From NCBI GenBank assembly GCA_004431415.1, contig QPMI01000433.1, positions 1 to 51,122 of the forward strand: a stretch of DNA of 51,122 bases. The letters are read 5' to 3'. Made by a program: the position numbers and the translations under genes. The notes under the pieces were generated by a model, which saw nothing but the letters and a program-made list of their open reading frames with translations, ran no database searches and was not told the DNA's origin. This document shows positions 33,369-51,122 of this stretch, in pieces. This DNA comes from Cyanophora paradoxa CCMP329 (lineage: Eukaryota > Plantae > Glaucophyta). Position 1 is the stretch's first letter. Every line of letters starts with the position of its first letter.

Positions 33369-35386
33369 ATGAAGCAGTCAAAGCGAAAGGAACCCAGCCT
33401 CTGGGATGACGGCTTCGACGAGGCCCGACGTCGGCACCGCTGGCACGGCAAGCGACCCGACAGCAGCAGCTCGTGGGCCGGCAAGGGCAACATGAAGCGT
33501 GTCAACAAGATCACTCAGCAGGCGCGCAAGGCGAAGGAGCCCAAGCTCCCTGACCTCGACATCCTCAAGGGCGAGCACCCGCGGCAACGGTCCGCTGCCT
33601 GGACACCAGCGGCCGCGCCTACCACGTTCGCCTTGGCGACTTCGTCATCTGTTCAGTTAGCTCAGACACCCAGCTGTGTCCAGAACTCAGCGTCGTTCGC
33701 CCGAAGCCCTTCCATTTCCCGCGCCCAGGTGAAACGATTTTGGCGCGAGTCGAGGGCGAGTTCCCAACACAGACGAAGGCGAAGCGCGGCGACTTCAACT
33801 ACTCCGTCAACGGCGTCATCCTTCGGCGCTTCGTGCGCCCGGAGGACTCCGATGTGAAGGACTGCGGGCTCGGCAGCGTGATCATCAAGGCAGACGGGGA
33901 GCAGGCAGCCGTGGCCATCGCAAACCACCTCATCTACTACTCGAACGTGACGGTCCGCCCGCCGCGCCCGCGCCCCGTTCCAGCGTCCGATGCCGTGCGC
34001 GCAGGTTCACGCACCCGCGAAGGTGGTGGCCGCGGACGAGTACAAAGCCCTCAACCACGCCGATCCCCACATCTACGTCTGTAAGCAAATCATGACGTTC
34101 CCGGGCGACGGCTCCTTCCAGTTCGACGTCGCCCTCGCCTTCAACGCGAGGCTCAAGCGAGTGGCGAAGAAGAAGATGGCGTGCTTCCTCCGGCCGCTGT
34201 CGAGGCCGGAGGAGCGCGTGGAGGCGATTGGCTACCTTCAGGACGCCGCCGCGAACGCCCTCAAGCGCCGGAAGACCGGGACGCAGCTTGTCAACGTCAA
34301 GATCCCGGTGGCCGGGCCGGCAATGTTGGTCTGCGGCTCTTATGACTCGTTCGAAGTTCTTTTCCTATCCTCTAACGGTGCGCATCGCAGGAGAACATCG
34401 TGGCGCAGGTCGCGCACGTCGCCACGCCCATCGACCGAAGACGGGCCAGCCGATCCCGGTTGACAAGCTGCCGGCGGCGAATCGCTTCGTTATCGAGCTT
34501 CCGGACCGCGAGACCGCTGCTGGTGGAAGCCGCTTCCTTTTTCCCGCTCGCTGTTCTTTTTCCGACCTCTTTGCAGCTGTTCTCGGTCCCTCCGGCGTGG
34601 CGCAAGCGTCCAAGCGCGTCTGCAAGCGGGACGCGGACGGGAAGGCGATCCGGAAGCACAGCGAGATGCAGACCGTCACCGTCGAGAAGGCGTACGGCGG
34701 CTTAATCGTGCCGCGCCACACGGGCTCCCATGACGTCGTCCAGTTCGACGAGCGTGCGCCCGGCCCGCCCTCGCCGCGCCGCTCGCTTACGAAGCTCTGC
34801 TCCTTGGGCGCGGCAGGTCCCGTCGGATCGTGGCCACGAAGCGCTCGGCAGGAAAGGTGGGCACGTCACGCTCGAGCTTCCGAGCTACGAGTACGGCCCC
34901 GACGGCGAGCGCATCGCCAGCCTCGCGGGCCCCTCGCGGCTGTCCCGTGAAGCGCCCGCGCCGGTGCCGCGCCGGCGCCAACACCGTCGCCAAGGCGCCG
35001 CCTGTCCCCGAAGCAGCCCCTTCAGAACCTGCCGCCGCCGCCCTGCCGGCCCCCGCCGCCGCCGCCCTGCCGGCCCCCGCCGTCGCCGCCCCGCCGGCCC
35101 CCGCCGCCGCCGCCCTGCGGCCGCCGCCGCCGCCGCCCCGCCCGCCCCGCCCCGCCGGTCGCCGCCCTGTCGGCCCTGCTGCTGCTGCCCCACCGGCCGC
35201 TGCCGCCCTACCTGCCCCCGCCGCATCCGCCTCGGTCCCAAGTGCGCCCCCTCCCCTCGCCCCCGCTCGGCTACTTGCTCGCCTAATCCTGCAGCAGGAA
35301 GGATCGCGCGGCACAGCTCGCGGCCGCGGTGGCGGCGCGCAAGAGGGCAAAGTCGTGAAGCTGCTACTGAGAATCGCACTATCTAG
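33369..35386 (+). CDS. Unknown multi-exon protein, convergent partner of the RAG1-like gene
   Basis: Exon-like segments with strong GC3 bias (MKQSKRKEPSLWDD.., RGDFNYSVNGVILRRFVRP.., YVCKQIMTFPGDGSFQFDVALAF.., TVTVEKAYGGLIVP..) joined by short introns; Pro/Ala-rich tail. No domain recognised. Confidence 0.6.
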
Positions 35387-35425
35387 GTTACAAGGTGCGC
35401 TATGTCTGGTCCAAATCCATTTCGT

Positions 35426-38400
35426 CTATTTCCCCTCCGCTAGATCGTCTGCTAGAACCTCTGCTAGGGCCCTATCATCGAAATCGAGCATGTTGGCGCC
35501 CTCATCCTCCGCCTCCATCTCCTCCTCCGCCTCCTCCTCTGCCTCGGCGTCGTACTCGGCGGTCTCCTCCTCCTCCTCCTCCTCGTCCCCGCTCTCCTCG
35601 GGCACCTCGTCCTCCGGCACCGGATCCCCTCCTGCAGCTCAATATCCTCGTCGATCTCCTCCTCGTCCGCAGGCAGGGGCACCGCTGCCACCTCCTCGCC
35701 CCCGGCGGCGCCGCCGCCGCCCCTTCGCCCTGCATAGCCGCTGACCGGTGGGACGGCCGCAGGTCGGGGGATGAAGGGCCCATCTGGCCAGGCCTTGGCG
35801 GCGACGGGCGCGTCGTACTCGGCGTGGGCAGCGTCCTTCCCGCCGGCGCTCGCCTCCGTCATGTTCCGCATCCACAGCGCCAGGCGCCGCCGCTGGTGCG
35901 TCATGATCTGCTTGAGCATGTCGAGGTCCTTGTTCCACCCGCCACCGAGAGACGTGACGGTGTGTCGCAGGCGCCGAAGGAGCCCATGTAGGACTCGATG
36001 ACCTCGCAGCTCCAACGGCCGGGCGCGTTCGTGTTGTCGACGCGCGCCCAGAACGCGAGGTGCGCAAGCGTCGAGTGCATGTAGCGTGTGAAGATCTTCC
36101 ATAACGGGAAGTGTGTCTCCATCAGGCCCTGGAGCTCGGCGACGGCCTCGATAACTTGCTGCCGCGCCTCCTCGTCGGGCTTCATGTTCCGCTCGTACTG
36201 GTAGATGATCTGGCGGAGCTGCCAAATCTCGTGCATGCCCTCGTCTTCTCGCTCCAGCTCTCCTTACTGTCGCCGAAGCAGATGCTGAAGAGGGTGTCGG
36301 GCGCCTCGGGGTCCTCCAGGATCTTCTTGGCGGTGTTGGCGGAGATCTTCTGGAAGAACTTGTAGGTGGCCCCGTTCTCGGTCTTCTCGAACTTGATGTT
36401 CCGCGCGTATTTATCGCGAAGATGACGCTGCAGGTCTTCGATGCGCTTCTGCTGGTCCTCGAGGCACCACAGGCGAGGGCGAGGAAGAAGTAGACGAAGA
36501 ACCCGGCCACCCAGCTCTTGATGCCGTGCAGGGCGTCGTCGAGCCGGACCTGAGGTGCGCGTTGGCGTCCGCTGAGGCGAGGTGTCGCGGGCTTCTCACC
36601 TCGACGGCAGCGACGGGCAGCATGCTGTTCGGGAGCGGCTGCAGGAGGGCGTTGGCGTCGTGCTCGGGGTGCGGATTCTCTGTTCGCTGGCTGGAGGGAG
36701 GCCGTCCCGATCCCGCGGCCCTGCTGCGCGCACGACTTCGACCGCCGAGCACTCGGACCTGCAGTAACGTGAGCCCCATGCCGAATCTCAGCGCGTGTGA
36801 CTCGGCGAACTGACCCGCGTCGGTGGACAGAATCGCAGTGCGGGCACAGGTCGAAGCCGAGGAGGACGCGGAGGAACTTGTAGTCGCCCGTCACCAAGAA
36901 TTCGACCTCGACGGGCTTGTCGTGCTCGTACCCGGGATCAGGGTGAGCGGGTTCTCGTTCAGGTACTCGACCATGTCGGCGAGGGCTTGATGCGTGGCGC
37001 AGGTTCTCCTCGCTGTCGCTACCGCCGAAGAGCATTAGGGGCAGGAGGGCGTAGCAGCTCTGAACGCCCTTCAGCGGGTGGTACGCCTGCGTCCCGTCCT
37101 CCTCGATGACGTAGTAGCCGTCGACGATTGCCACGATGCAGGTCATGCCGTCGGTCGTGGAGACGCTCTTCCCGCGGAACGCGATCGTCCCGTCGCCCGC
37201 CAGGCGGACTCGAGGTCTGATCTTCTTCCCCTGTGCTTGTGCAGCGGGACGAAAGCGCTGATGAGGGCCGACAGGGCGGGCGTCGGCGTGACAGCTCTGC
37301 GGGGCGGCGGCGCTGCCGCCTCTCCGCCCGCCGCCGGCGCTGCCGCCTCTCCGCCCGCCGCCGGCGCTGCGCTCGACGGAGGCACAAAGAGCTCGAGCAT
37401 GACGCCCGGCTTGCCCTTGTTCTCCTCGTCGCCGACGCCCGCCGCTGTTTCGACGATCTGCACGATCTGCACCGCTCGGTGAGCCTCGTCCCTCACCCCG
37501 CCCCGCGCGCGCGCGCCGCGCCTTCTCGAGGTCATCGTTGACCTTGCCCGTAGCTTCGTGATGCAGTGCTTCGACGGGAGGAAGGCTCGCAGCCCCACGA
37601 AGTGCTTCTTCAGGGCCTTCTTGAGGAGCTTCGTGAACTCAAAGTACGTCGCCTGCCCCGGGTCGGTTTAGAACGGGATGGGGGTTAAAACATTCGAGAA
37701 AGGGCGCACGTCCGAGATGCAGTGGCGGTCCTTCCACTCTAGAATCTCGCAGTCGGGAAGGTGTCCCGCAGCTTCCTGCAGGCGATGCTCATCGCCTTCT
37801 TCACTTGCAGCTGACCCGATTTGCTCGTTTCCAGGGCTCGTTGGGCCTGCGGACGGTGGTTCAGAAAGGTGCTCTTCTCCAACGATTTTGTAGCCTATTA
37901 AAGTACGATTCTCGGTAGCTCTTTTTATGTATAATAACGCGCACTGCGTGTGGCCCGATGATGCTCACGAGGCGGCGTGCCTCCGCCTCCAGCGCCTCCC
38001 TCCTCTTCTGATAGGCGCCCTCCTCCTCTCCTTTGTTCCTGGGGCGCCCTGGATAAGCATGCATATGCCTGCGCGCGCGCCGCCCCGCCTTGTACCTCGC
38101 GAAGTTCTTTTTAAACATGGGGAGGCGGATCTGGATGTCCGGACTCGCAGCGTTTAGAATCGTCGAGAGCAGCATGCGGAGGAACCGCGTGCGCCGCTGC
38201 CTGGACGTATCCGAGCATCCCTTCCCAGGGACCTGCCTAGCTATGCGCGAGATGGTCGCTGCACGCTGTGCCGAAGTCCGCGGGACCTTGGCGCGCTTCG
38301 ACTGGTGCTCCTCCCTAAGCTTCTTGTTCTCCGCCTCAAGCACTGCGATGCGCTCGTCGCGCGCTTTGAGCGTCGCCTTGCGGACGATCCGCTCCTCAGG

Positions 38401-38440
38401 CGGCACATCTTCCTTGCCGCGAGCGCGTTTCGGGGCGGTG
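35426..38440 (-). CDS. RAG1/Transib-like DDE transposase (spliced; frameshifts may be assembly errors)
   Basis: Ordered motifs: CSDTSRQRRTRFL; ILEWKDRHCISD-ATYFEF..LPSKHCITKLR; RVRLAGDG (D at 37192-37194); CYALLPLMLFGGSDSEENL; FLVTGDYKFLRVLLG (D at 36883-36885); CPHC; DDALHG; ISANTAKKIL; TRYMHSTLAH; GRWSCEVIES (E at 35994-35996); acidic tail. Confidence 0.8.
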
Positions 38441-38544
38441 CCGGGGCCGGGGCCGGCCGCGGCGCCGGGCTCGGCGCCTCATTAAGAACTGCATTCGTCT
38501 GCTCGCGGCCGGGCAGAGAGCATACACTCGTAAGCGCGGGCAAG

Positions 38545-39063
38545 TCAAGTCATGACATCGAATTTGAATGAGCGGCATACCACGTCGGCGCCGAACGCGC
38601 GACGACCGCGCTGCTGCTGCTGCTCTGGGCTAATCTGAGGCGATTGCGGGCTCGCTGGAGCCGATGGCGACCCGGGTGGCGAAGCTGGAGGGCTCTGCAG
38701 GATGCACTGGAGGAACACAGCCACTGCGGTGGCCTCTTGAAGCGCCGCCGTGCAAGCTAAGCTATGCGGATACAATGGAGACGCAATGCCGCGCGCCTCC
38801 AGTTCCAGGTGGGCGTTTCGGCTGTGGGTGAGCACTGCGATGATCCGCATAAGCGCCTGGTACGCGACCGACGCGTCCGCCATCTCTAAAACGACTGCTG
38901 CGGGCGCTGGAAACGTTTGGGGCGCGGGCTGGGCCGCGGGACGGGGCGCGATGGGTCGCTGCATCGCGCGGGCGGGTTCAAAACTCGGAAAAAAAGATCG
39001 CGTGTACCTCCCCTGCCATCTGCGGAAGCGGCAGCTCCGAGCGCCGCGAGCAAGCATACACAT
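38545..39063 (-). CDS. Hypothetical orphan ORF
   Basis: 172-aa ORF with plausible helical core and Pro/Ser/Gln tail; no motif recognised. Confidence 0.3.
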   Translation of the reverse strand: MCMLARGARSCRFRRWQGRYTRSFFPSFEPARAMQRPIAPRPAAQPAPQTFPAPAAVVLEMADASVAYQALMRIIAVLTHSRNAHLELEARGIASPLYPHSLACTAALQEATAVAVFLQCILQSPPASPPGSPSAPASPQSPQISPEQQQQRGRRAFGADVVCRSFKFDVMT

Positions 39064-39366
39064 CCGCGACAGTTAGGCGCCGAAGAGCAGCAGGCGAGCC
39101 CAGCATGCGCGATAATGCGCAATTGCGATGCATAGCTACCTTAGGCGAAGCGGCTGGTCCACCCGCGCGGTCCTTGCCGGCCGCGATGCTCGCTCGTCGA
39201 TATGGGTATGACGCGCTAAGCAAGGGGAGCATGCCCAGACTGGGTACGCAAACTGCTGAACGTCCAACTCCAGCTGAACGCCCTGCAGCTGGTGGGCCTG
39301 AAGCAGCCTCAAGCGTTAGCTATGTCGCATCGACAGTGTAGCTATGTTAGCTGTGGAGCGAAGCAT

Positions 39367-40098
39367 ATGCCCGCTGACTACGTGTCCGAGGAGGAGGACC
39401 AGGAGGAGACCATCAACGCGCCGTGCAATCGCCCAATGACTTCGTCTGTCATCGAGATCAACAGCAGCGACTCGGAGAGCGATGGACCAGCGGCAGCGCG
39501 CCGAGCGCAGGGCGCGCATGAAGGCGGACGAGGAGCGCGCGCTCGAGGAGGAGGATGAGATCAGGCGGCGCCACCAGGCAGCTTTGGAGGTCAACCTCGC
39601 AATAGAGCGCGACTCGGTGAGGCCATACAAGCTGGCCGAGCTCAAGCAGTTGCTGGAGTACGCGCGCGCGTGGATGCGCGAGCACGAGCAGCTGTACGAG
39701 CAGTTCGAGGTCGCGCTGGCGCACAACAACCTCCTCGAGGCCATTAACCTGCGGTCGGAGATCCGCAAGCACCGCAGCACGGCGCGCTTCTGCGGGCAGG
39801 ACCCCCTCGGCTCTACGAGGAGGCGGCCTTCAAGCCTCTCTATGACAACGTGACGGCCTTGCAGCGGCGGGCGGGGCAGATGGAGCATTTCGGCGACAAT
39901 CTCTTCAAGTGCGCGGAGCACTTCCAGCGGGTGCGCATCCGGCAGCAGCAGGCGGCGGCGGCGGCGGCGGCGGAGGCGGCGGAGGCGGCGGCGGAGGCGG
40001 ACGGGGCTGCTGCTGCTGCTCGGTGCAAGCGCCGCCGCCTGCGTCGCGGCGACGGCGTGCTCGTCTCGCGGCCGGACGATGCCGACGACGAAGCGTAG
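39367..40098 (+). CDS. Apparently intronless charged/coiled-coil hypothetical protein (two frameshifts)
   Basis: MPADYVSEEEDQEE.., ..ERRARMKADEERALEEEDEIRRRHQAALE..LKQLLEYARAWMREHEQLYEQFEVALAH..; strong GC3 bias. Confidence 0.45.
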
Positions 40099-41909: not shown

Positions 41910-43661
41910 CTAGCGCCCGATGGCGGGCGCCTCGAAAGGCGACGTCTCCGGCGGCACAGCAGCGTGTAGCTGCTGGACCGCGGCGACCCACCCTGCGACC
42001 CTAGGCCCCGGGTTCCGCATGAGCACGTCCCTCATGTAGAGATACTCGATAACGGCCTCCAGCTCCTCCACCTCCTTTATGTACATGCGCTCCTCCTTCC
42101 GCCACACCTTCGCCTCACGCTCCAACTCCAAGTCCCAATTCCTCTTCATCCTTGAGACCTGCGCCGCGCCGCGTTACGCGCCAGCGGGCGCACGCACGCG
42201 TGTGGGCAATCGCGGACCTTGTTTTCCAAGTCATCCACCTTCGTCTGCAGCGCAGCGTTCTGGTTCTGCAGCTCCTCGCACTCCTCTTCGAGGTTTTTGA
42301 CCCGAGTCGCTCTCTGCGGGCGCCGGAGGGACCGCCGTCAGCAGCGCATTGCGGGCGCCGGCGGCGCGGGCGGCGCGGCGGCCGGCGGGCTCACCAGACT
42401 GGCGTTGAGCTGCATCATCTCCTTCTCCAGCTGAGCGATCTTCTCCTCCCGTTGAGCGATCTGCCGCTGCTTCTCCCTGTTGGCCCACCGCAGATCAGGG
42501 AGCTCCCGCTCCAGGGAGCTGCACTTCTGTTGGAGCTCCTCACGCTGCGCCGGTGCACGGAGGAACACGTCGACTTTCGCCTTCAGTTGATTGGCGAGCT
42601 CCGCGCCAGTTAGACCCTTGTCTAGGACATCCTGCGGCCCGAATCAGCGAGGCAAGCTGCGGGCGAAGCGCACGGCGGCGTGAAACGGCGCGCGCACACG
42701 CTGCTGAAGGTACTCGATCGCTTCAAGGAGCTTGGACGCCATGCGAACCGCATCGGAAACCCGCTTGCAGCCGGTGAGCCTCCGATAGAGTGCGGCGTCC
42801 TCCTCCTCGATGCGAAAGCGGTGCCGCCCGGGCTTGTCCCAGGGGTGAATCGATCTTCCTCCTCGCCCGTCATCTCGACATCGCACTTGCGCCGCTTGCA
42901 CTGCTGCTTGGTGGACGTGGCGGGCTTCTTCGGGGCTGGCTTCTTCGCGGCTGAGCTGGCAGGCGACGGCGCGACAGAGGGATCGTCCATATACCGCTCC
43001 ATGGCAACGAAGGGATCCTCATATTGCTCGCTCGGTGCCGCCGCGGGCGAAGGCTGGGAGGTCGCCGCCGCTGCCCGCTTGCGACTCACGCGCTTAGGCA
43101 TGTCCACGGGGTCGCTGGCGAGGCCGCTGCCGCCGGCGGCTGCGTGCGTGGAGGCGTGGCCGGCTGATCATGCGAAGGCTGCGATTGCGAGGGCGCAGCT
43201 ACTACCCGCTTGCGACGCGGGCGATCAGGCGTGTACACGGGGGTCGCTGATGAGGCAGCTGCGACAGGCGGCGTACACGGCTGTACAGGCGTACCCCCCC
43301 CCAAAGGCGTCCCTGGCGTCTCACAGCAGCCGCTGCCGGGGCTCTGCTCGAGCTCTGAGCGTACTGGCGAGACTTGTGGGGAGTCGCTCCCGCCCGCCGG
43401 CTCCGCCGCGGGAGGCGCCAGCGCGACCGCGGCCGTCGCATGCGCAGCTGGCGCTGCATGCGCAGGCTGAACGACTTGCTCGCTCAAAGCTGCGTCGCCA
43501 AAGTCGTCTGGATTCACGTCCTCGCCGAGGTCGTCCTGGCTGCCGCAGGTGCTGCCGCCAATCTGGCCGTGCCGCGGCCTGCCATCGCTGGCGCCGCCCA
43601 GCCACGCTCTAATGGAACCGAACGCTGAGCCGACCTTGGCAGACAGCACAGAGAGCGGCAT
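41910..43661 (-). CDS. Run of minus-strand hypothetical coding segments (coiled-coil and low-complexity)
   Basis: ORFs 43086-43661, 42622-43107, 42338-42568 (ELQQKCSSLERELPDL..IAQLEKEMMQL) and 41910-42149 may be one spliced or frameshifted gene. Confidence 0.35.
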
Positions 43662-43869: not shown

Positions 43870-44365
43870 ATTGTTAAAGCTCGCGAACTAGCGGGATGTC
43901 CAAAAGGTCGCGCCGTTTTCGGCCCGTCGAGGTCCGTCCGGGGCCGTCTGCGACATGCGAAACAGCTCCTTACGCGCGGAACAATAGCATAAGCATTTGA
44001 GATGTAGGCAAAGACTTCCGCACGCTTTGCGTATGCGCCGGGCCGCGAGGACCCAGCCGACCCCGAAAATTCGATCCTGTACGTATACGGACCTGCACAG
44101 CTTTCCGCGCGCCCTCGCATCCTCGCGCGTGCGCATCGCTACAATAGTAATTTGAGATCTTTGTTAAGCTTTTCGCGAGCTCCGAGGACGCGACAGGGCG
44201 CGAGAATCCAGCCGACCCCGAAAATTCGATCCTGCATGGACCTGCACGTCTTTCCGCGCGCCCTCGCCTCCGCAGCCCCGCACATCGGTGCTATATGCGT
44301 TCGAGATTCTGTTTAAGCGATTTGCAAGCTCTGTGCATGCGCCTGGCCGCGAGAACCTCGCCCCT
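43870..44365. repeat. Degenerate ~150-bp tandem repeat (about 3 units)
   Basis: ccagccgaccccgaaaattcgatcctg at ~44053 and ~44208; ctttccgcgcgccctcgc twice; ttgagat..ttaagc motifs recur. Confidence 0.7.
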
Positions 44366-46071
44366 CCCGGGCCTCCTTCCCAACAATATTATATAATTAA
44401 TCTCTTCTCAATCTGCTCCACCCTTTAGTTCCTCAGTAAATTAATATTCCTCTAGCCGGCCAGCGCTAGCTGGACTGGCCGTCAGCCAGCCAGCTTCCAG
44501 CCAGCTGCAGAAAGCTGTTCGCGATCGGCCAGGCCGCTGGCCAGTCGCTGAGTGCCCTATATATATAGGCCTACTGTAACAGCGGCGAGGGCGTCCGCGA
44601 GGCTTCGCCGTACTTAGTGCTCCGCAGGAGCACGGATCTTGTTGATTTAATCGATATTATATTCATGTACTTTCTCGATTAAATTTAATTAAATTTAATT
44701 CATTTAATCGGAAACATATCGCTAAACTCGATTAAGATCCATAAAAGATTCATTTGTTAAATAAAACAAATCGATCTCTTATTGAATTCAATCGTAATTA
44801 TACATGAAATTGATATGTTATTATCATTGTTTTGTTGAGTCTAAGGGGGGACCCTTAGAAATGTTATGTATAATCTTTCAGGCAGCATTTATTTGTCAGG
44901 CATTTAATCTATCGATTTTCATAAAGTATTTTATTTTGGCTAAGTCATTGTTTGGATTAACAATGAAATTTCAATTTTATAAAAGTTTTCTAAAAAGGTG
45001 CCTGACAATGCCTGACATACTATATTAGTGCCTGACAACTATATTATAGTGCCTGACAAACCATATATGGTAATACTATATGTTATAACCTACTTTCTCA
45101 GTGTTAGTTGGTGTAGTTGATTCAAAAAATGCATTTTATACTCTGATTCATTGTTATTTCCTGTGAAATTTGAGTCAACTCAACCCACTTAGTCAACCCT
45201 TGCATTGAATTCGTAACAAAATCCATATACTATTACTACTTTTACGATTAATATGAGTCAACCTTGAGTCCACTTTAATATAAATATTATATAATAGGGG
45301 GAATCAAGGGGAGATGCTTAGAAACATATGAATTATTGAACCTATGATACTTATATCGTCACGCAGGCCTCGTTAAGAGGATTTCGAATCTGTTTTTGGT
45401 TTTGTCAGATGATGAGTTGGTGAAGAGATACATTCGTTTTAGTGTTTTGTATGTGGTTTAATGATATGATGTCATAATGCATGGGTTTTCGTCAACAGTT
45501 AAATGAACAGTTAAGTGGACACCGTTTCACGATAAACGAGTAGACACTGCCTACTCCCAACAGGTGTCCACTTAACTGTTCACTTAATTGTTCGCAATTT
45601 GCTTCATTGTCTTTCAATAGCTTTCCCGCATATCTTGTTTTCAATTGTTGTTGCAGTACACTATTACAATAGTTGTCTCGTTAACTGTTCACTTATCTGT
45701 TCGCTGCGGAAAAAAGACGATGACGGACGTGTTATGTTACGAAATGATGTCATAATGACGATGCATATGTATATGATATATATGACACACCATCGAACTC
45801 GGGAGATCATGACGATCACGGCGATATATATATGTTATGTGTTTATGATACATCATTATTACATCATTATGATGCATCATTCCGAAATCTCGAAAAATCG
45901 ATAATCGGCATCTTCAAACGCTTGTATCTCATCACCAGATCATCAAAACGCAACGTTCTGCATATCGCTGTGAAGCGCTTGAAAAGATCTACAAGACAAT
46001 GTGTATATCATATGCATATATGTATATCAGTCATACATATATTTGGAAAAAACGAGTTTTCGCCTAGCAAA

Positions 46072-47457
46072 CTAGCTAGTTTTGGTCCTTTCTCTTAGTG
46101 TTCTTTGAGGTTTAGGGGCTGTATATGACTCCTTAGTAGTCTGAAAGTCACTATACCATCTCTGGCTATTCACTTCTGAAAGTTTCTGTGTCCCTGCTAT
46201 AGTGAGCTTTTTGAGTTCCCTGTTAACTTTCCCAGCCTTCTCCTTTCTAGCCTCTATCAAAGGCTTATCTGGGACTTCATTAGCAGCTTCTATGCCTTCT
46301 CTCCTTATAGCAGCATCAACCTTGGCTTCCTCTTTGGCTTGCTCTAATGCATCCACTGTAGGTGTTTCCAGATACTCAACTGAATTCACAGGTAACAGCT
46401 CATGGAAAGCAAACCTGTTTTCTATGATCTCACCAGTGGGACTCCTTAGCTTAAACTTAAAGCCTTCCCTACTATCAACAGTGTAAACCATCCTAGACCA
46501 ATTGTTACCCTGTTTAGCAAAGGCATTTTTCTCAACTTTCACTCTAACAAACATGCCTGGCTGCATGGTATCAAGGTAAGCTATTGATTTCTTGAATCTT
46601 TCATCTTCTAATCCCACTATATACCTATAATGCTCCTCTGTAGTTTCGCCTGGCTTCATCTTAGTAGCTGAGTGAACTGTATTATTGTAATTATACTCAA
46701 TATCTCCTAACACATCAAAGAATCTAGCTGTGTTATTGGCTATGCAGTAGTTTGTGATCAATCTCTTAATCTGCTTGTTAAAGGCTTCAATTCGACCTTG
46801 GCTTCTATGGTCAGCAGTTCCACTCACTTGGTGTTCTATGAATTTACTAGATAAATACTCCTGGAATATTCGATTTTGGAACTCACTCCCAGCATCTGAT
46901 TGAACTTTTACTATGGGTCTTGCTACTCTCATCTCAAGCTGTTTAAATGCAGCTAATGTAGTGAGAGCTGATTTATCCCTTATAGGTATGATATACCCAG
47001 TTCTCAGTGTTGATTCCATTGCAGTCATAAATGTATCATAGCCATTGTTTTGTTTCTTATAAGCTGGGAAAAAGAGCAAATCAATCACATAGGTATCAAG
47101 GGGTTGCCTTATTGGGACCATGGGATCTCTCTTCCTAGATATAGCAGGTGCATTGATCTGAACTACCTCTTGCTTTTTATAGAACTCTTGCAACTGCTTA
47201 TAGGATTCATCTGGTAACTCAGCCCTCATAGCTTGAAGCCCTTTGTAACCAGTTCTCACATCATAGAATCTCTTGGCAATCTTACTGGTTTCTTTCACTG
47301 CAATAGCAACTGGGATCTCTACTGGGACAAGCTCTTTCATCTCAGACTTTTTAACAATTCGAGATTCCCCCTTTTCTTCCTTTGGAACTGTGATGGGCAG
47401 TAGGTTACCTTGCAGTTGCTCAGTGGTTCTCCTAACTATTCTTCCAGTTGCTGGCAT
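46072..47457 (-). CDS. Retroviral-type (rve) DDE integrase, Polinton-like
   Basis: 461 aa; YVIDLLFF (D), VQSDAGSEF (D), GRIEAFNKQIK (E), YNNTVHSATKMKP, and C-terminal VRV..FAK..NWS..GEIIENRF..EL segment typical of Polinton integrases. Confidence 0.92.
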   Translation of the reverse strand: MPATGRIVRRTTEQLQGNLLPITVPKEEKGESRIVKKSEMKELVPVEIPVAIAVKETSKIAKRFYDVRTGYKGLQAMRAELPDESYKQLQEFYKKQEVVQINAPAISRKRDPMVPIRQPLDTYVIDLLFFPAYKKQNNGYDTFMTAMESTLRTGYIIPIRDKSALTTLAAFKQLEMRVARPIVKVQSDAGSEFQNRIFQEYLSSKFIEHQVSGTADHRSQGRIEAFNKQIKRLITNYCIANNTARFFDVLGDIEYNYNNTVHSATKMKPGETTEEHYRYIVGLEDERFKKSIAYLDTMQPGMFVRVKVEKNAFAKQGNNWSRMVYTVDSREGFKFKLRSPTGEIIENRFAFHELLPVNSVEYLETPTVDALEQAKEEAKVDAAIRREGIEAANEVPDKPLIEARKEKAGKVNRELKKLTIAGTQKLSEVNSQRWYSDFQTTKESYTAPKPQRTLRERTKTS

Positions 47458-47460
47458 CTC

Positions 47461-49872
47461 TTAATTAAAAGGAACAGAATTAATACCATCTGGTAAGATG
47501 TATCTCTTTGCATCAAAGCAGTTTAGGGCAACCCTTCTACTCACAGTATCTATTATTGTGTGATCTGCCCTTCTCTTCTGCTTTGCAGTCACAGTCTTGC
47601 TGATACCTGCAAATAAACACTCCTTAAAATCATTGAATTGGAGTTCCTCAGTGGAAGTCCCAGATAGCTTACTTCTCTCAATCTCAGCTGTTCTGAAACT
47701 GTAAACTTTGGCTCTCAGACCCACATACTCCAATATAGCAGAACCTGGCATCTCATTTTTGTATTTACCTGGGGTCATTCTTGAATCACCTCCAAGGTCC
47801 AAAGAATAAGCAATATTCTCTATATCTTTTGCAATGGTCTTAGATTCAATATATAGACAGAAGGAGTCAGTATCATGGAATAGTAACTTGGCTTTGGACC
47901 ATTGGGACCTCACAGTATCATAGAAGAACTTGTAGTTATGCAGTTTGGCAGCATCCAAAACATAAGCCCCAATAGCAACTGGCTTATCTAGTTTCACATG
48001 CTTTGTGTAAAACTCAAATGCAACTGCCCTTTCACCTATGGGACTTGTTGATTTCACTAAAGGAGAGGCTGCATATTTCATAAATAGCTTCTCAGTGTTG
48101 GCAATCTTAACCACAGATCTACCTCTACATGATTCAATGCATTTCCCATAGATTGAATTATTCATGAGTTTATAGAAATCAGCCTCGAATTTATTCACTG
48201 CTTTCCTTCTCATCTCAGTATTCAGCTCAATGTAGGGTTTCATTACAGGAGCCACAGTAAATGAGAGGACCCTGTGGACTTTACTCAATTTCACCCCTTT
48301 GTCCAACAGATACTGTAGAAGAGGCTCAGAAATCACATAGTTTGTCACAGAACCAAAGGTTGCAGTTAGCTTAGGGGTCTTATCAAGCTCTTCTCCTGAA
48401 AGATCCAACAGGCTCTTTTGATATTGTGATAATTCCGCATATTCTACTATTTTCTTGTTAATAATTAGGGGGAAATCACTGTGGTCTAGATATAGCCTTA
48501 TTGGGTATTCCAGATCAACTTCCAGGAAACTGGATCTGTTATCTTGTGGGTTGAATTCGGTCTCCCATCTAAAATCACCAACTGGAATTGGCTGACTCAA
48601 ACAGTAGCCATACAAGTTGTTAGCATCAAACAGCATAATGTGGGAGTTCTCACCATCAGCCTCAGCATACCTACAAGGCATTGTTGCAAAGCCACCCCTG
48701 ATTCCCCTCTCAACAAATTCGTATTGCTCTACATCACTTATAAGCTCTATTTTTGCCTCGGTGGTCCTAAGCATAGCATCCCAAGATAACCCAGGTGCAG
48801 ATACATAATGAACTGGGTCAAGTCCATATACTGAGTGTGAAAGCCTTCTGAAGGCTTGGAATTTGTTCATTAACTCATCTACATCAGCAGCTCCAAAATC
48901 CATGAAATTGCTTGCATCAATGAACTTGTAAAGACCCCATTGCAATGAAAGGTATTGATCAAAGTTTTTCGAAAGGATTTCGATTCGCTTTTTATCACCC
49001 ATGCCTGCTATTTTTCTGAAAATGAATGTCCCACAGTCATCCATTTGGTCAACAACCACTGCTACTTTTGTTTGCTTTGAGATTCTCCTATGGAGATTGC
49101 AGTTTCTGCATGCAGGAGCAATATAATGACCTGTGTGGTGATCATGATCCCTGCATTTGAAGTTCTCTTTGGTGAACCTCTCACTGCAAAGGTAACAGTG
49201 TTTAGTAGCCTTGTAAATTGCTTTCTGCTCATCTGTGAGTTCATTCATGGGAATATTGGTAAACAGGAAGTCAATTAGCTCTCTTGCTTTGGATTCCAAG
49301 CATTCAAACAGACCTCCCATTGGATCCTGCCCCTCAAATCGAAACTCCTGAACATCTGCCCCAGTGACTATTCTTATGTTGACTGCTGAGACTTCTCTCT
49401 TGGATTTTGATGCATCAATGGGGATGCTTCTATGTTCAATCTTGCAGTATACCACAACAGGAAGCCACACAGTTTTCCTGAGGTTTTTCAGTCCAAACTC
49501 TATGGTGGTCTCAGGTTTAGGTGTGATTCCCTTTGAGAGTCTCCAATCAATGCATCTGTTTGAGTCCACATGAGCAGTGAGTTTAGCCTCAGACCTGAAT
49601 CGAGATAAACATGTATCACAGTAGTGTAACTTTTGATCCTTGGTTTTATCAAGGGCAACTCTGAGAAGTCTTGAAAGGGACATGATTGTAATATAGTGAC
49701 CATTCCCTTCATCATCATGAATGAGCATGAGATTAACCTTTTGCTTTCTACCTGGGTTACTGGATTGATGTAGGGGATATATAACATCTCGATCCATTCC
49801 AAATATGTTTATGCTGATGCCTGCATTTTGAGATTCGAATTTATCAATGATAGCAGCCACCAGTTGGAGCAT
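47461..49872 (-). CDS. Protein-primed family B DNA polymerase (pPolB)
   Basis: 803 aa; FDANNLYG, KLMNNSIYGK, FHDTDS, GLRAKVYS, YGLDP..SAPGLSWDAML, GIRGG; C2H2-like HYCDTCLSRF..LTAH; EndoVII-like CYLC..RDHDHHTG..ACRNCN. Confidence 0.92.
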   Translation of the reverse strand: MLQLVAAIIDKFESQNAGISINIFGMDRDVIYPLHQSSNPGRKQKVNLMLIHDDEGNGHYITIMSLSRLLRVALDKTKDQKLHYCDTCLSRFRSEAKLTAHVDSNRCIDWRLSKGITPKPETTIEFGLKNLRKTVWLPVVVYCKIEHRSIPIDASKSKREVSAVNIRIVTGADVQEFRFEGQDPMGGLFECLESKARELIDFLFTNIPMNELTDEQKAIYKATKHCYLCSERFTKENFKCRDHDHHTGHYIAPACRNCNLHRRISKQTKVAVVVDQMDDCGTFIFRKIAGMGDKKRIEILSKNFDQYLSLQWGLYKFIDASNFMDFGAADVDELMNKFQAFRRLSHSVYGLDPVHYVSAPGLSWDAMLRTTEAKIELISDVEQYEFVERGIRGGFATMPCRYAEADGENSHIMLFDANNLYGYCLSQPIPVGDFRWETEFNPQDNRSSFLEVDLEYPIRLYLDHSDFPLIINKKIVEYAELSQYQKSLLDLSGEELDKTPKLTATFGSVTNYVISEPLLQYLLDKGVKLSKVHRVLSFTVAPVMKPYIELNTEMRRKAVNKFEADFYKLMNNSIYGKCIESCRGRSVVKIANTEKLFMKYAASPLVKSTSPIGERAVAFEFYTKHVKLDKPVAIGAYVLDAAKLHNYKFFYDTVRSQWSKAKLLFHDTDSFCLYIESKTIAKDIENIAYSLDLGGDSRMTPGKYKNEMPGSAILEYVGLRAKVYSFRTAEIERSKLSGTSTEELQFNDFKECLFAGISKTVTAKQKRRADHTIIDTVSRRVALNCFDAKRYILPDGINSVPFN

Positions 49873-50473
49873 AACTCATAATAGCCACTCTGAGCATTTC
49901 GATTCTCTCAAGTCGATAGCTATCAACAACATTCATCTGTTCCTGACACATTTGGGCTGCTTTATTCAGCTCAGTTCGAATATTTCTCGATTTGGTTAAT
50001 ACAAAATAATCACTGTAAATGTATTTCGATATCCAAACCTGTGGATTGCTGACTTTAACGAACTTGCAGATAAAAGATAAGCGAACTTTGATTGCCCTGA
50101 ATTGATATAGACTGTCTCTTAAACGTTTTGGAAGAGAGGTTGCAATTCTATCTAAATATTCAATCACATCTACCACAACTTCCCTTCTGGCTCTGTATGT
50201 GAGCCAGCGATATAATTCATTCATGGCTGTTCCATCTTCTGCCTCTGGTTCTATTTGCCTCAGGCGATCGAGTTCATCAAGAGTCTCAACTTTGTCATAG
50301 AGGTTATTGGCTTTTCTGGTTAATTTTGCTAAAGTGGGTCTGCCCCTTGAAATAAATCCGATTTCCCGGTCATATTCAGCCTCTGTGATTTCATGGGCTG
50401 CATACAGTGTTCCCAGTAATCCCATGAGTTCCCATTTCTTCTCTCTAATGAGTCTGTTGCTAATTCGGGGCAT
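49844..50473 (-). CDS. Putative terminal-protein region resembling the N-terminus of Polinton pPolB polyproteins
   Basis: 209 aa; IKVRLSFICKFVK..YIYS..LERIEMLRVAIMSYAPTGGCY resembles the segment that precedes the OTU-like region in Polinton pPolBs; overlaps the pPolB start by 29 nt. Confidence 0.6.
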   Translation of the reverse strand: MPRISNRLIREKKWELMGLLGTLYAAHEITEAEYDREIGFISRGRPTLAKLTRKANNLYDKVETLDELDRLRQIEPEAEDGTAMNELYRWLTYRARREVVVDVIEYLDRIATSLPKRLRDSLYQFRAIKVRLSFICKFVKVSNPQVWISKYIYSDYFVLTKSRNIRTELNKAAQMCQEQMNVVDSYRLERIEMLRVAIMSYAPTGGCYH

Positions 50474-50507
50474 TGTTCCTAACTTGTTCCTACTCTCAAT
50501 AAATATT

Positions 50508-50825
50508 TTATTCTGAGATGTTCTGAACGCGATTTTCTAGTTTCTTTCGCAATTTGGCTTTGTAATGCATTGGATTATGTGATCCATTTTTTGTCCATAC
50601 ATTTGGGTTTTTGTGATACTGTTTAAGGGCGTTAATTAAGTTTTTCTCTGTTTGTAATCGCAAACAATCAATATCTTTGGAGGAAAGCTGTGACATTTGA
50701 TACCCATCACATTTGCTTTGGCATTTGATGATTTTGTCTATAAGAGCTGGTATATCCTTCAAATCATCTTTTTCGAAATGTTTGTTTTCAATCATTGAAC
50801 TCATTCTGGTAGTCCAGTTTGCCAT
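50508..50825 (-). CDS. Hypothetical 105-aa protein of the element
   Basis: ATG-initiated ORF, co-oriented with and 34 nt from the next ORF. Confidence 0.55.
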   Translation of the reverse strand: MANWTTRMSSMIENKHFEKDDLKDIPALIDKIIKCQSKCDGYQMSQLSSKDIDCLRLQTEKNLINALKQYHKNPNVWTKNGSHNPMHYKAKLRKKLENRVQNISE

Positions 50826-50868
50826 TTTGTACTGTTTACTATTATAAGAATGTATTTGTTTTAAATCC

Positions 50869-51029
50869 TCAGGCAGAATTCGATTGTCAGGCAGCTGATT
50901 CAGCTAACATTAAGAAACTCTGTCACTTTTTGCAAGTCAGTGTTCGCAAAAACAATGAAACCATGAACTTATAAAAGTTAAATAGAAAGGTGCCTGACAG
51001 TGCCTGACAGTGCCTGACAGTGCCTGACA
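50869..51029. promoter_or_regulatory. TGCCTGACA motif module, second copy (first at 44878-45058)
   Basis: (GTGCCTGACA)x4 at 50990-51029 with inverted tcaggca/tgtcaggca copies upstream; lies directly 5' of the minus-strand gene cassette. Confidence 0.5.
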
Positions 51030-51122
51030 AGCTCTTTAACAATCATCATCATCCTCATCAATAAACTCTCTTGTATTTTCCGAAATCAGTTTTACACACT
51101 TGTAACCTCTATCATATACTTT

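Follow-up and report, generated by a model that had tools for sequence, protein, structure and literature searches.

A minus-strand gene interrupted by assembly errors

The stretch of DNA analysed here, hereafter the window, is the 51,122 nucleotides of contig QPMI01000433.1 (positions 1 to 51,122, forward strand) of the glaucophyte Cyanophora paradoxa CCMP329, and its minus strand carries a gene for a putative transposase of the RAG1/Transib type. A preliminary description made from the letters alone had listed eight RAG1-like motifs in order between 35426 and 38440, and proposed that they belong to a hidden, intron-containing transposase gene in a probable algal genome. Three-frame translation of the minus strand recovered all eight motifs, colinear and in the order given. 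They are joined in P0001 (tig00000137_g8141.t1), an unannotated 944-residue EukProt model of Cyanophora paradoxa (EP00741), where they start at residues 414 (RLAGDG), 474 (GGSDSEENL), 520 (TGDYKFL), 535 (CPHC), 602 (DDALH), 668 (SANTAKKIL), 753 (TRYMHSTLAH) and 776 (GRWSCEVIES). The algal origin was confirmed by the EukProt cluster look-up, which names Cyanophora paradoxa; the gene is not hidden, being already a predicted, unnamed EukProt protein.

When P0001 was mapped by exact matches to the minus strand in its three frames, it ran from 38883 down to 35403. The locus proposed in the preliminary description is therefore correct and its limits are not, as the gene spans 35403 to 38883. The motifs fall in different frames, and the mapping accounts for this by about eight genuine introns, all short, and some ten positions at which the window, and only the window, is one base short relative to P0001. 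Contigs of DNA and RNA sequencing runs were aligned over 35300-39100, and those of two DNA runs have one extra base, C or G, at 35431, 35625, 35698, 35749, 35754, 35981, 36237, 36460, 36665, 36933, 36982 and 38448, and a single base at eight more sites. As these insertion sites coincide with the frame slips, the frameshifts in the window are assembly errors; in the sequence derived from reads the frame stays open. The gene is real and is intact in the reads, in line with the earlier suggestion that it may be intact because frameshifts occur at a similar density in housekeeping genes; the short-read comparison proposed at that time reopened the frame by these same insertions. Over 35300-39100 the window lacks about 20 single bases in 3.8 kb relative to the short-read contigs, or roughly one per 190 bases, and every deletion listed above is a missing C or G. 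Reading this assembly by its open reading frames (ORFs) is unreliable at such a density.

GC content at the first, second and third codon positions of P0001 is 0.66, 0.46 and 0.84 overall and 0.63, 0.42 and 0.89 in the core. Given this strong codon periodicity in the core, the minus-strand frame is the true coding frame rather than an ORF left open by chance in GC-rich DNA. For residues 548-576 the periodicity is weak. The EukProt models of paralogues disagree with one another between the CPHC and DDALH motifs, and the intron set of P0001 is only partly verified.

All parts of the gene lie on the minus strand. A putative RNase H-like catalytic part (residues 407-546; 36811 to 37227), recognized from motifs read directly and from the features of residues 400-700 described below, contains D418 (37192-37194), D522 (36883-36885) and the CxxC pair C535/C538 (36835-36846). 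It is followed by a predicted helical domain reaching from DDALH (D603, H606) to H757 (36075 to 36543), by a candidate zinc-histidine pair, H757/H762, with the presumed catalytic glutamate E784 (35994 to 36077; coordinates checked), and by acidic C-terminal tail exons (residues 868-944; 35403 to 35632 in the P0001 mapping). On the N-terminal side of the catalytic part, an in-frame tandem repeat of AAGGEAAAP units (37322 to 37382) varies in copy number among paralogues, with two units in P0001 and three in the copy P0002, and the DNA unitigs break at 37337-37341.

Relationship of the predicted protein to RAG1 and Transib

The queries in the searches described below were the window sequence or the stored protein P0001; RNA-supported exons were joined only for a scan for stop codons. 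With residues 730-870, RAG1 (PF12940) was the sole family match in Pfam (E 0.031; 12.8 bits, where the cut-off is 25), residues 752-827 lying on profile positions 556-628. A PDB sequence search with the same residues returned RAG1 in three of its four matches (E 0.5-1.7). The HMMER alignment, to RAG1 932-974, pairs H757, H762 and E784 with H937, H942 and E962, as had been proposed when TRYMHSTLAH was equated with the zinc-binding histidine pair of RAG1 and GRWSCEVIES with the region of E962. Entries of the 6oem series have Q at the position aligned with E784, consistent with a catalytic E962. In this alignment the protein has the H-x4-H pair and following catalytic-type glutamate that mark RAG1 and Transib.

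A feature search of ESM-Atlas retrieved RAG1_RNase_H, ZnC2 and ZnH2 clusters for residues 400-860 (0.94) and 400-700 (0.95). The shorter query, for which RAG1_RNase_H/ZnC2 was best, excludes the H-H-E motif. Two AlphaFold runs were made on paralogue-only alignments, with a predicted local distance difference test (pLDDT) of 35.9 and 49.5. In both models residues ~600-757 are helical and are aligned by VIA-align onto RAG1 790-934 with Z 8.0-10.1 over 126-138 residues and a root-mean-square deviation of about 4.4-5.2 Å, in an all-helical region for which Z below about 13 can arise by chance; the larger model repeats the match. When VIA-align was run without bias against 48,161 representatives, all five chains with Z>=8 were RAG1/BbRAGL (790-934), and the next chain (Z 7.7) lay on a different part of the model. 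In a Foldseek re-alignment the top 21 rows were all RAG1 or amphioxus BbRAGL (Z 8.1-10.1 over 122-137 residues). BbRAGL itself reached Z 8.7 (889-1032), HzTransib Z 6.0 over 120 residues, and unrelated chains at most 6.2. The structure search proposed earlier therefore found its RAG1/RAGL match in low-confidence models of a ZnH2-like region. Between DALH and the two histidines the low-confidence helical models thus point to a ZnH2-type domain, the likely counterpart of that of RAG1. The structural match starts at DDALH, which agrees with its earlier pairing with IDALH of RAG1, and stops where the sequence match starts, so that two adjacent and nearly non-overlapping segments follow one colinear RAG1 register.

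The spacing of the remaining motifs is also RAG1-like. D418 and D522 are 104 residues apart (108 in RAG1), H762 and E784 22 apart (20) and D418 and E784 366 apart (362); read by eye, CPHC stands 13 residues past D522 (19 in RAG1) and 219 ahead of H757 (207). We take the RAG1 counterparts of D418, D522 and C535/C538 to be D600, D708 and C727/C730. D418 and D522 lie in RAG1-like motifs at RAG1-like spacing, and AlphaFold pLDDT there is 25-30. The kinship that the preliminary description had proposed is thus supported by Pfam, PDB, ESM-Atlas and VIA-align, all with scores below curated thresholds, and we regard homology to RAG1/Transib as very probable. As an observation apart, residues 463-497 (window about 36955-37059) match DUF1280 weakly (PF06918, E 0.28), and DUF1280 also occurs among the ESM-Atlas neighbours, in cnidarian clusters. 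DUF1280 proteins may be related to RAG1/Transib.

Several results count against this kinship and against the element being a transposon of this type. No sequence score, whether from Pfam or PDB, reaches a curated threshold. Whole-protein searches of Pfam (P0001-P0005) and PDB were blank, as was Pfam on the raw window ORFs of the locus; phmmer against PDB with the whole protein or with residues 395-870, 395-560, 500-570 or 590-705 gave no RAG1 match, and the CPHC-bearing piece matched only generic zinc fingers in PDB. An exhaustive phmmer search of 1.8 billion representatives with a 147-residue RNase H piece, part of it translated intron, retrieved no sequence outside its family, and word-based searches with the core found only paralogues. 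By ordinary criteria the protein is a sequence orphan. Searches by hidden Markov model and by structure left both aspartates, and the RNase H part as a whole, without an alignment. Confidence in the AlphaFold models is low (pLDDT 36 and 49.5), the match they yield is all-helical with Z in the range reachable by chance, and the model of residues 240-870 is too poor to inform on an RNase H fold. Terminal inverted repeats, CAC-type ends and a 5-bp duplication were not found by inverted-repeat scans, a combined scan for terminal inverted repeats and 5-bp target-site duplications, and a gapped comparison of flanks, all within this one window. The candidates that these scans yielded were GC-rich low-complexity pairs and two chance matches (32403/39910 and 33356/42682) without duplications, and they were rejected. 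Finally, the assembled RNA contigs, which show presence and not absence, include no sense mRNA across the core.

Some of these results would suit a DDE transposase from a different eukaryotic superfamily (hAT, P, Kolobok, MULE, KDZ or similar) whose zinc-braced RNase H core came to resemble that of RAG1 by convergence alone: the RNase H part was not aligned to RAG1 in any search, and Transib-type ends with their 5-bp duplication were not found in the window. Yet RAG1 was the only transposase family to appear in the Pfam, PDB, Atlas and fold searches, and the register from DDALH through the two histidines to the glutamate is colinear with RAG1 790-974. We accordingly consider such convergence improbable.

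Copies of the element and antisense RNA

The copy count called for earlier gave at least 11 paralogous models in EukProt Cyanophora paradoxa, on 11 contigs, some of which may be haplotig duplicates; a word search with the frame-0 ORF gave five of them and a cluster look-up the rest. Where the exon models of the paralogues agree, the sequences differ little or not at all, and no base differences were seen in the high-depth unitigs. In one DNA run, unitigs matching the window in all but indels have a depth of 366-393, and unrelated contigs 11-19; in a second run the corresponding depths are about 1,600 and 21-53. As these depths lie far above those of unrelated contigs they suggest tens of copies, contig depth not being itself a copy number. 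A metagenome scan and an exact-protein contig look-up found no further copies. Several near-identical copies thus stand at different loci, as expected of an active transposon.

Two further observations concern the extent of the copies. A minus-strand ORF at 43086-43661 begins with ~99 residues that recur without change at the N-terminus of P0002, the model of a further transposase copy, on contig tig00021758, so at least one other copy also has this sequence upstream. Perhaps the repeat continues for several kb past the gene, or else tig00021758 is an alternative assembly of the locus. Low-depth joints from 35721/35722 to 38433/38436, present in both DNA and RNA runs, skip about 2.71 kb; they may represent internally deleted copies or artefacts of GC-rich repeats, as no more than 21 letters match on the shorter side.

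Taking the protein and its copies together, we think it likely that the locus holds a single copy of a young DNA transposon that is multi-copy in Cyanophora paradoxa and that encodes a very divergent transposase of the RAG1/Transib superfamily. Its RNase H fold, catalysis, element ends and mobility are drawn by analogy with RAG1 and Transib. On that analogy, D418, D522 and E784 would form the active site within an RNase H fold, and C535, C538, H757 and H762 a C2H2 zinc site that braces it; the transposase would nick the element ends, form hairpins on the flanking DNA, and then integrate the excised element.

The abundant RNA at the locus is of the opposite strand. Joints found in two RNA-like runs, and absent from both DNA runs, define a spliced plus-strand RNA over the catalytic core (35761 to 38037). 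Eleven GT..AG introns are removed from it, at 35896-35972, 36060-36125, 36231-36278, 36366-36433, 36555-36610, 36769-36830, 36942-37002, 37081-37141, 37215-37274, 37479-37553 and 37644-37834, and a twelfth at about 35393-35760, whose joint (35392 to 35761) ties the RNA to the neighbouring region. The 5' splice sites are good, for example GTGAGC and GTGCGC. The antisense contigs have a depth of about 800-900, and unspliced contigs over the 3' end only 17-40; an unspliced contig of an RNA run covers 35598-35790 at low depth. A single sense intron has RNA support, at 38038 to 38094 on the minus strand, where the joint 38037 to 38095 of run X17 is an intron of P0001 (CT..AC on the plus strand, GT..AG on the minus). 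Introns were therefore rightly proposed, about eight short ones being present in P0001. The motifs can likewise be joined in that model, and no sense transcript joining them was seen, the assembled RNA being antisense. Two sense introns predicted by P0001, 36752-36810 and 36544-36593, overlap the RNA-supported antisense introns at 36769-36830 and 36555-36610; their minus-strand splice sites differ, and in the contigs seen they are without RNA support.

With twelve canonical plus-strand GT..AG introns, a depth of about 800-900 and no sense contig crossing the core, the spliced plus-strand transcript might itself be taken for the real gene, and the minus-strand transposase for a by-product of GC-rich open frames. 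However, none of the three frames of the joined plus-strand RNA is free of stops, and it resembles an antisense translation. The antisense introns cut out 161 sense codons, those of H757 and H762 among them, which keep their periodicity (0.55/0.39/0.86), so that minus-strand codons inside and outside these introns hold third-position GC at 0.86-0.89 against 0.39-0.42 at the second. The minus-strand protein, moreover, matches RAG1 by sequence, features and fold. We judge it very improbable that the plus strand holds the gene. Because it has stops in every frame and periodic sense codons lie inside its introns, the plus-strand RNA is a spliced antisense RNA, probably non-coding. Joined to the region of the convergent neighbour, it probably limits expression of the transposase.

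Neighbouring sequence and relation to known elements

A second gene, on the plus strand at 33369 to 35392, lies tail to tail with the transposase gene; it was identified by three-frame reading and is broken by the same kind of assembly indels. Five pieces of it gave no Pfam match at E<=1 or E<=10, Kelch, RAG2, PHD and BAH included, no PDB sequence relative, and no homologue within the 132-420 residue length band searched. A RAG2-like partner (kelch propeller with or without PHD) was thus not found, the neighbour having been tested as frameshifted fragments only.

This layout invites comparison with a full RAGL transposon of ProtoRAG type, in which the convergent neighbour would be a RAG2-like cofactor. 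The tail-to-tail arrangement is as such an element would have it, and the ZnH2 region is closer to RAG1/BbRAGL (Z 8.7-10.1) than to HzTransib (Z 6.0). The pieces of the neighbour, however, gave none of the matches just listed, ends resembling recombination signal sequences were not found in the window, and the gap in Z may only mirror the zinc-binding domain, which is shorter in typical Transibs (Tao et al. 2022; PMC9435367). A complete RAGL transposon is therefore an unlikely description of this locus, and a divergent RAG1/Transib transposon remains the reading that we prefer.

Two features of the surrounding DNA may be added. On the plus strand, divergent from the start of the transposase gene, an ORF at 39482-39853 encodes 123 residues rich in charge, possibly a coiled coil, without a Pfam match. 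The block from 44000 to 51122 is AT-rich (36-46% GC, against 62-74% in most of the preceding 30 kb), and its minus-strand ORFs match protein-primed DNA polymerase B (PF03175, E 9e-14) and, both below the Pfam cut-off, endonuclease VII and an rve-type integrase core. It looks like an insertion of a Polinton-like element or polinton-like virus beside GC-rich host DNA.

RAG1-like and Transib transposases are the route by which the origin of the V(D)J recombinase has been traced. The preliminary description had held such elements to be known mainly from animals, with few unicellular examples. Their occurrence outside animals is not new: an active RAGL element is published from the pelagophyte Aureococcus, and bacteria, fungi and plants have Transib-like proteins (Tao et al. 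2022; PMC9435367), and the protist RAGL case has been accepted by others (Martin et al. 2023; PMC10462144). A literature search found no paper pairing Transib with Cyanophora, and the supplements of Tao et al. 2022, which contain no searchable protein motifs, have no Cyanophora entry (PMC9435367). The Cyanophora copy extends this known family, to which it adds the glaucophyte lineage, introns, a neighbour that is not RAG2, and antisense RNA.

Compared with RAG1 and RAGL proteins (mouse RAG1, BbRAG1L and AanRAG1L), the Cyanophora protein has the D, D, CxxC, DALH, H-x4-H and E-S motifs in the same order and at similar spacing, a modelled ZnH2-like helical domain that superposes on RAG1 790-934 and BbRAGL 889-1032, an H-H-E motif that aligns to RAG1 932-974, and a convergent second gene alongside. 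It differs in having no detectable RAG2-like partner, RING or N-terminal RAG1 region, in its acidic tail where those proteins have a cysteine-rich C-terminal tail, and in a sequence similarity that stays under the Pfam threshold; its gene has several introns, whereas the AanRAGL genes are single-exon (PMC9435367). With Transib elements (HzTransib and the subgroup I and II Transibs) it shares an autonomous, multi-copy organization, a RAG1-core-like transposase and the lack of a RAG2 gene, and a non-animal host fits their published distribution in animals, fungi, plants and bacteria (PMC9435367). Unlike them, it has an extra convergent gene and antisense RNA, its model matches HzTransib less well (Z 6.0 over 120 residues) than RAG1, and CAC-type inverted repeats with a 5-bp duplication were not found in the window. 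Antisense-transcribed transposons, which are controlled by the host or by themselves through antisense or double-stranded RNA, likewise have plentiful RNA complementary to the coding region of their transposase; the Cyanophora RNA is distinguished from theirs by its 12 canonical introns and its junction to the neighbouring region.

These differences allow the tentative suggestion, which we hold to be possible but well short of likely, that the element is a third kind within the RAG1 family, neither Transib nor RAGL: an intron-bearing, active lineage of Glaucophyta in which the transposase is accompanied by an unrelated, convergently oriented partner gene and the activity is controlled by a spliced antisense RNA that comes from the side of that gene. 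If vertically old, such a lineage would place RAG1-type transposases in early Archaeplastida. As a divergent, intron-containing and apparently young family in a glaucophyte, the element represents an independent deep eukaryotic lineage that helps to test vertical descent against horizontal spread. It is possibly active, and its ends and partner protein could depart from those of both Transib and RAGL. Its dominant spliced antisense RNA offers a testable case of transposase control in an alga little studied for mobile DNA.

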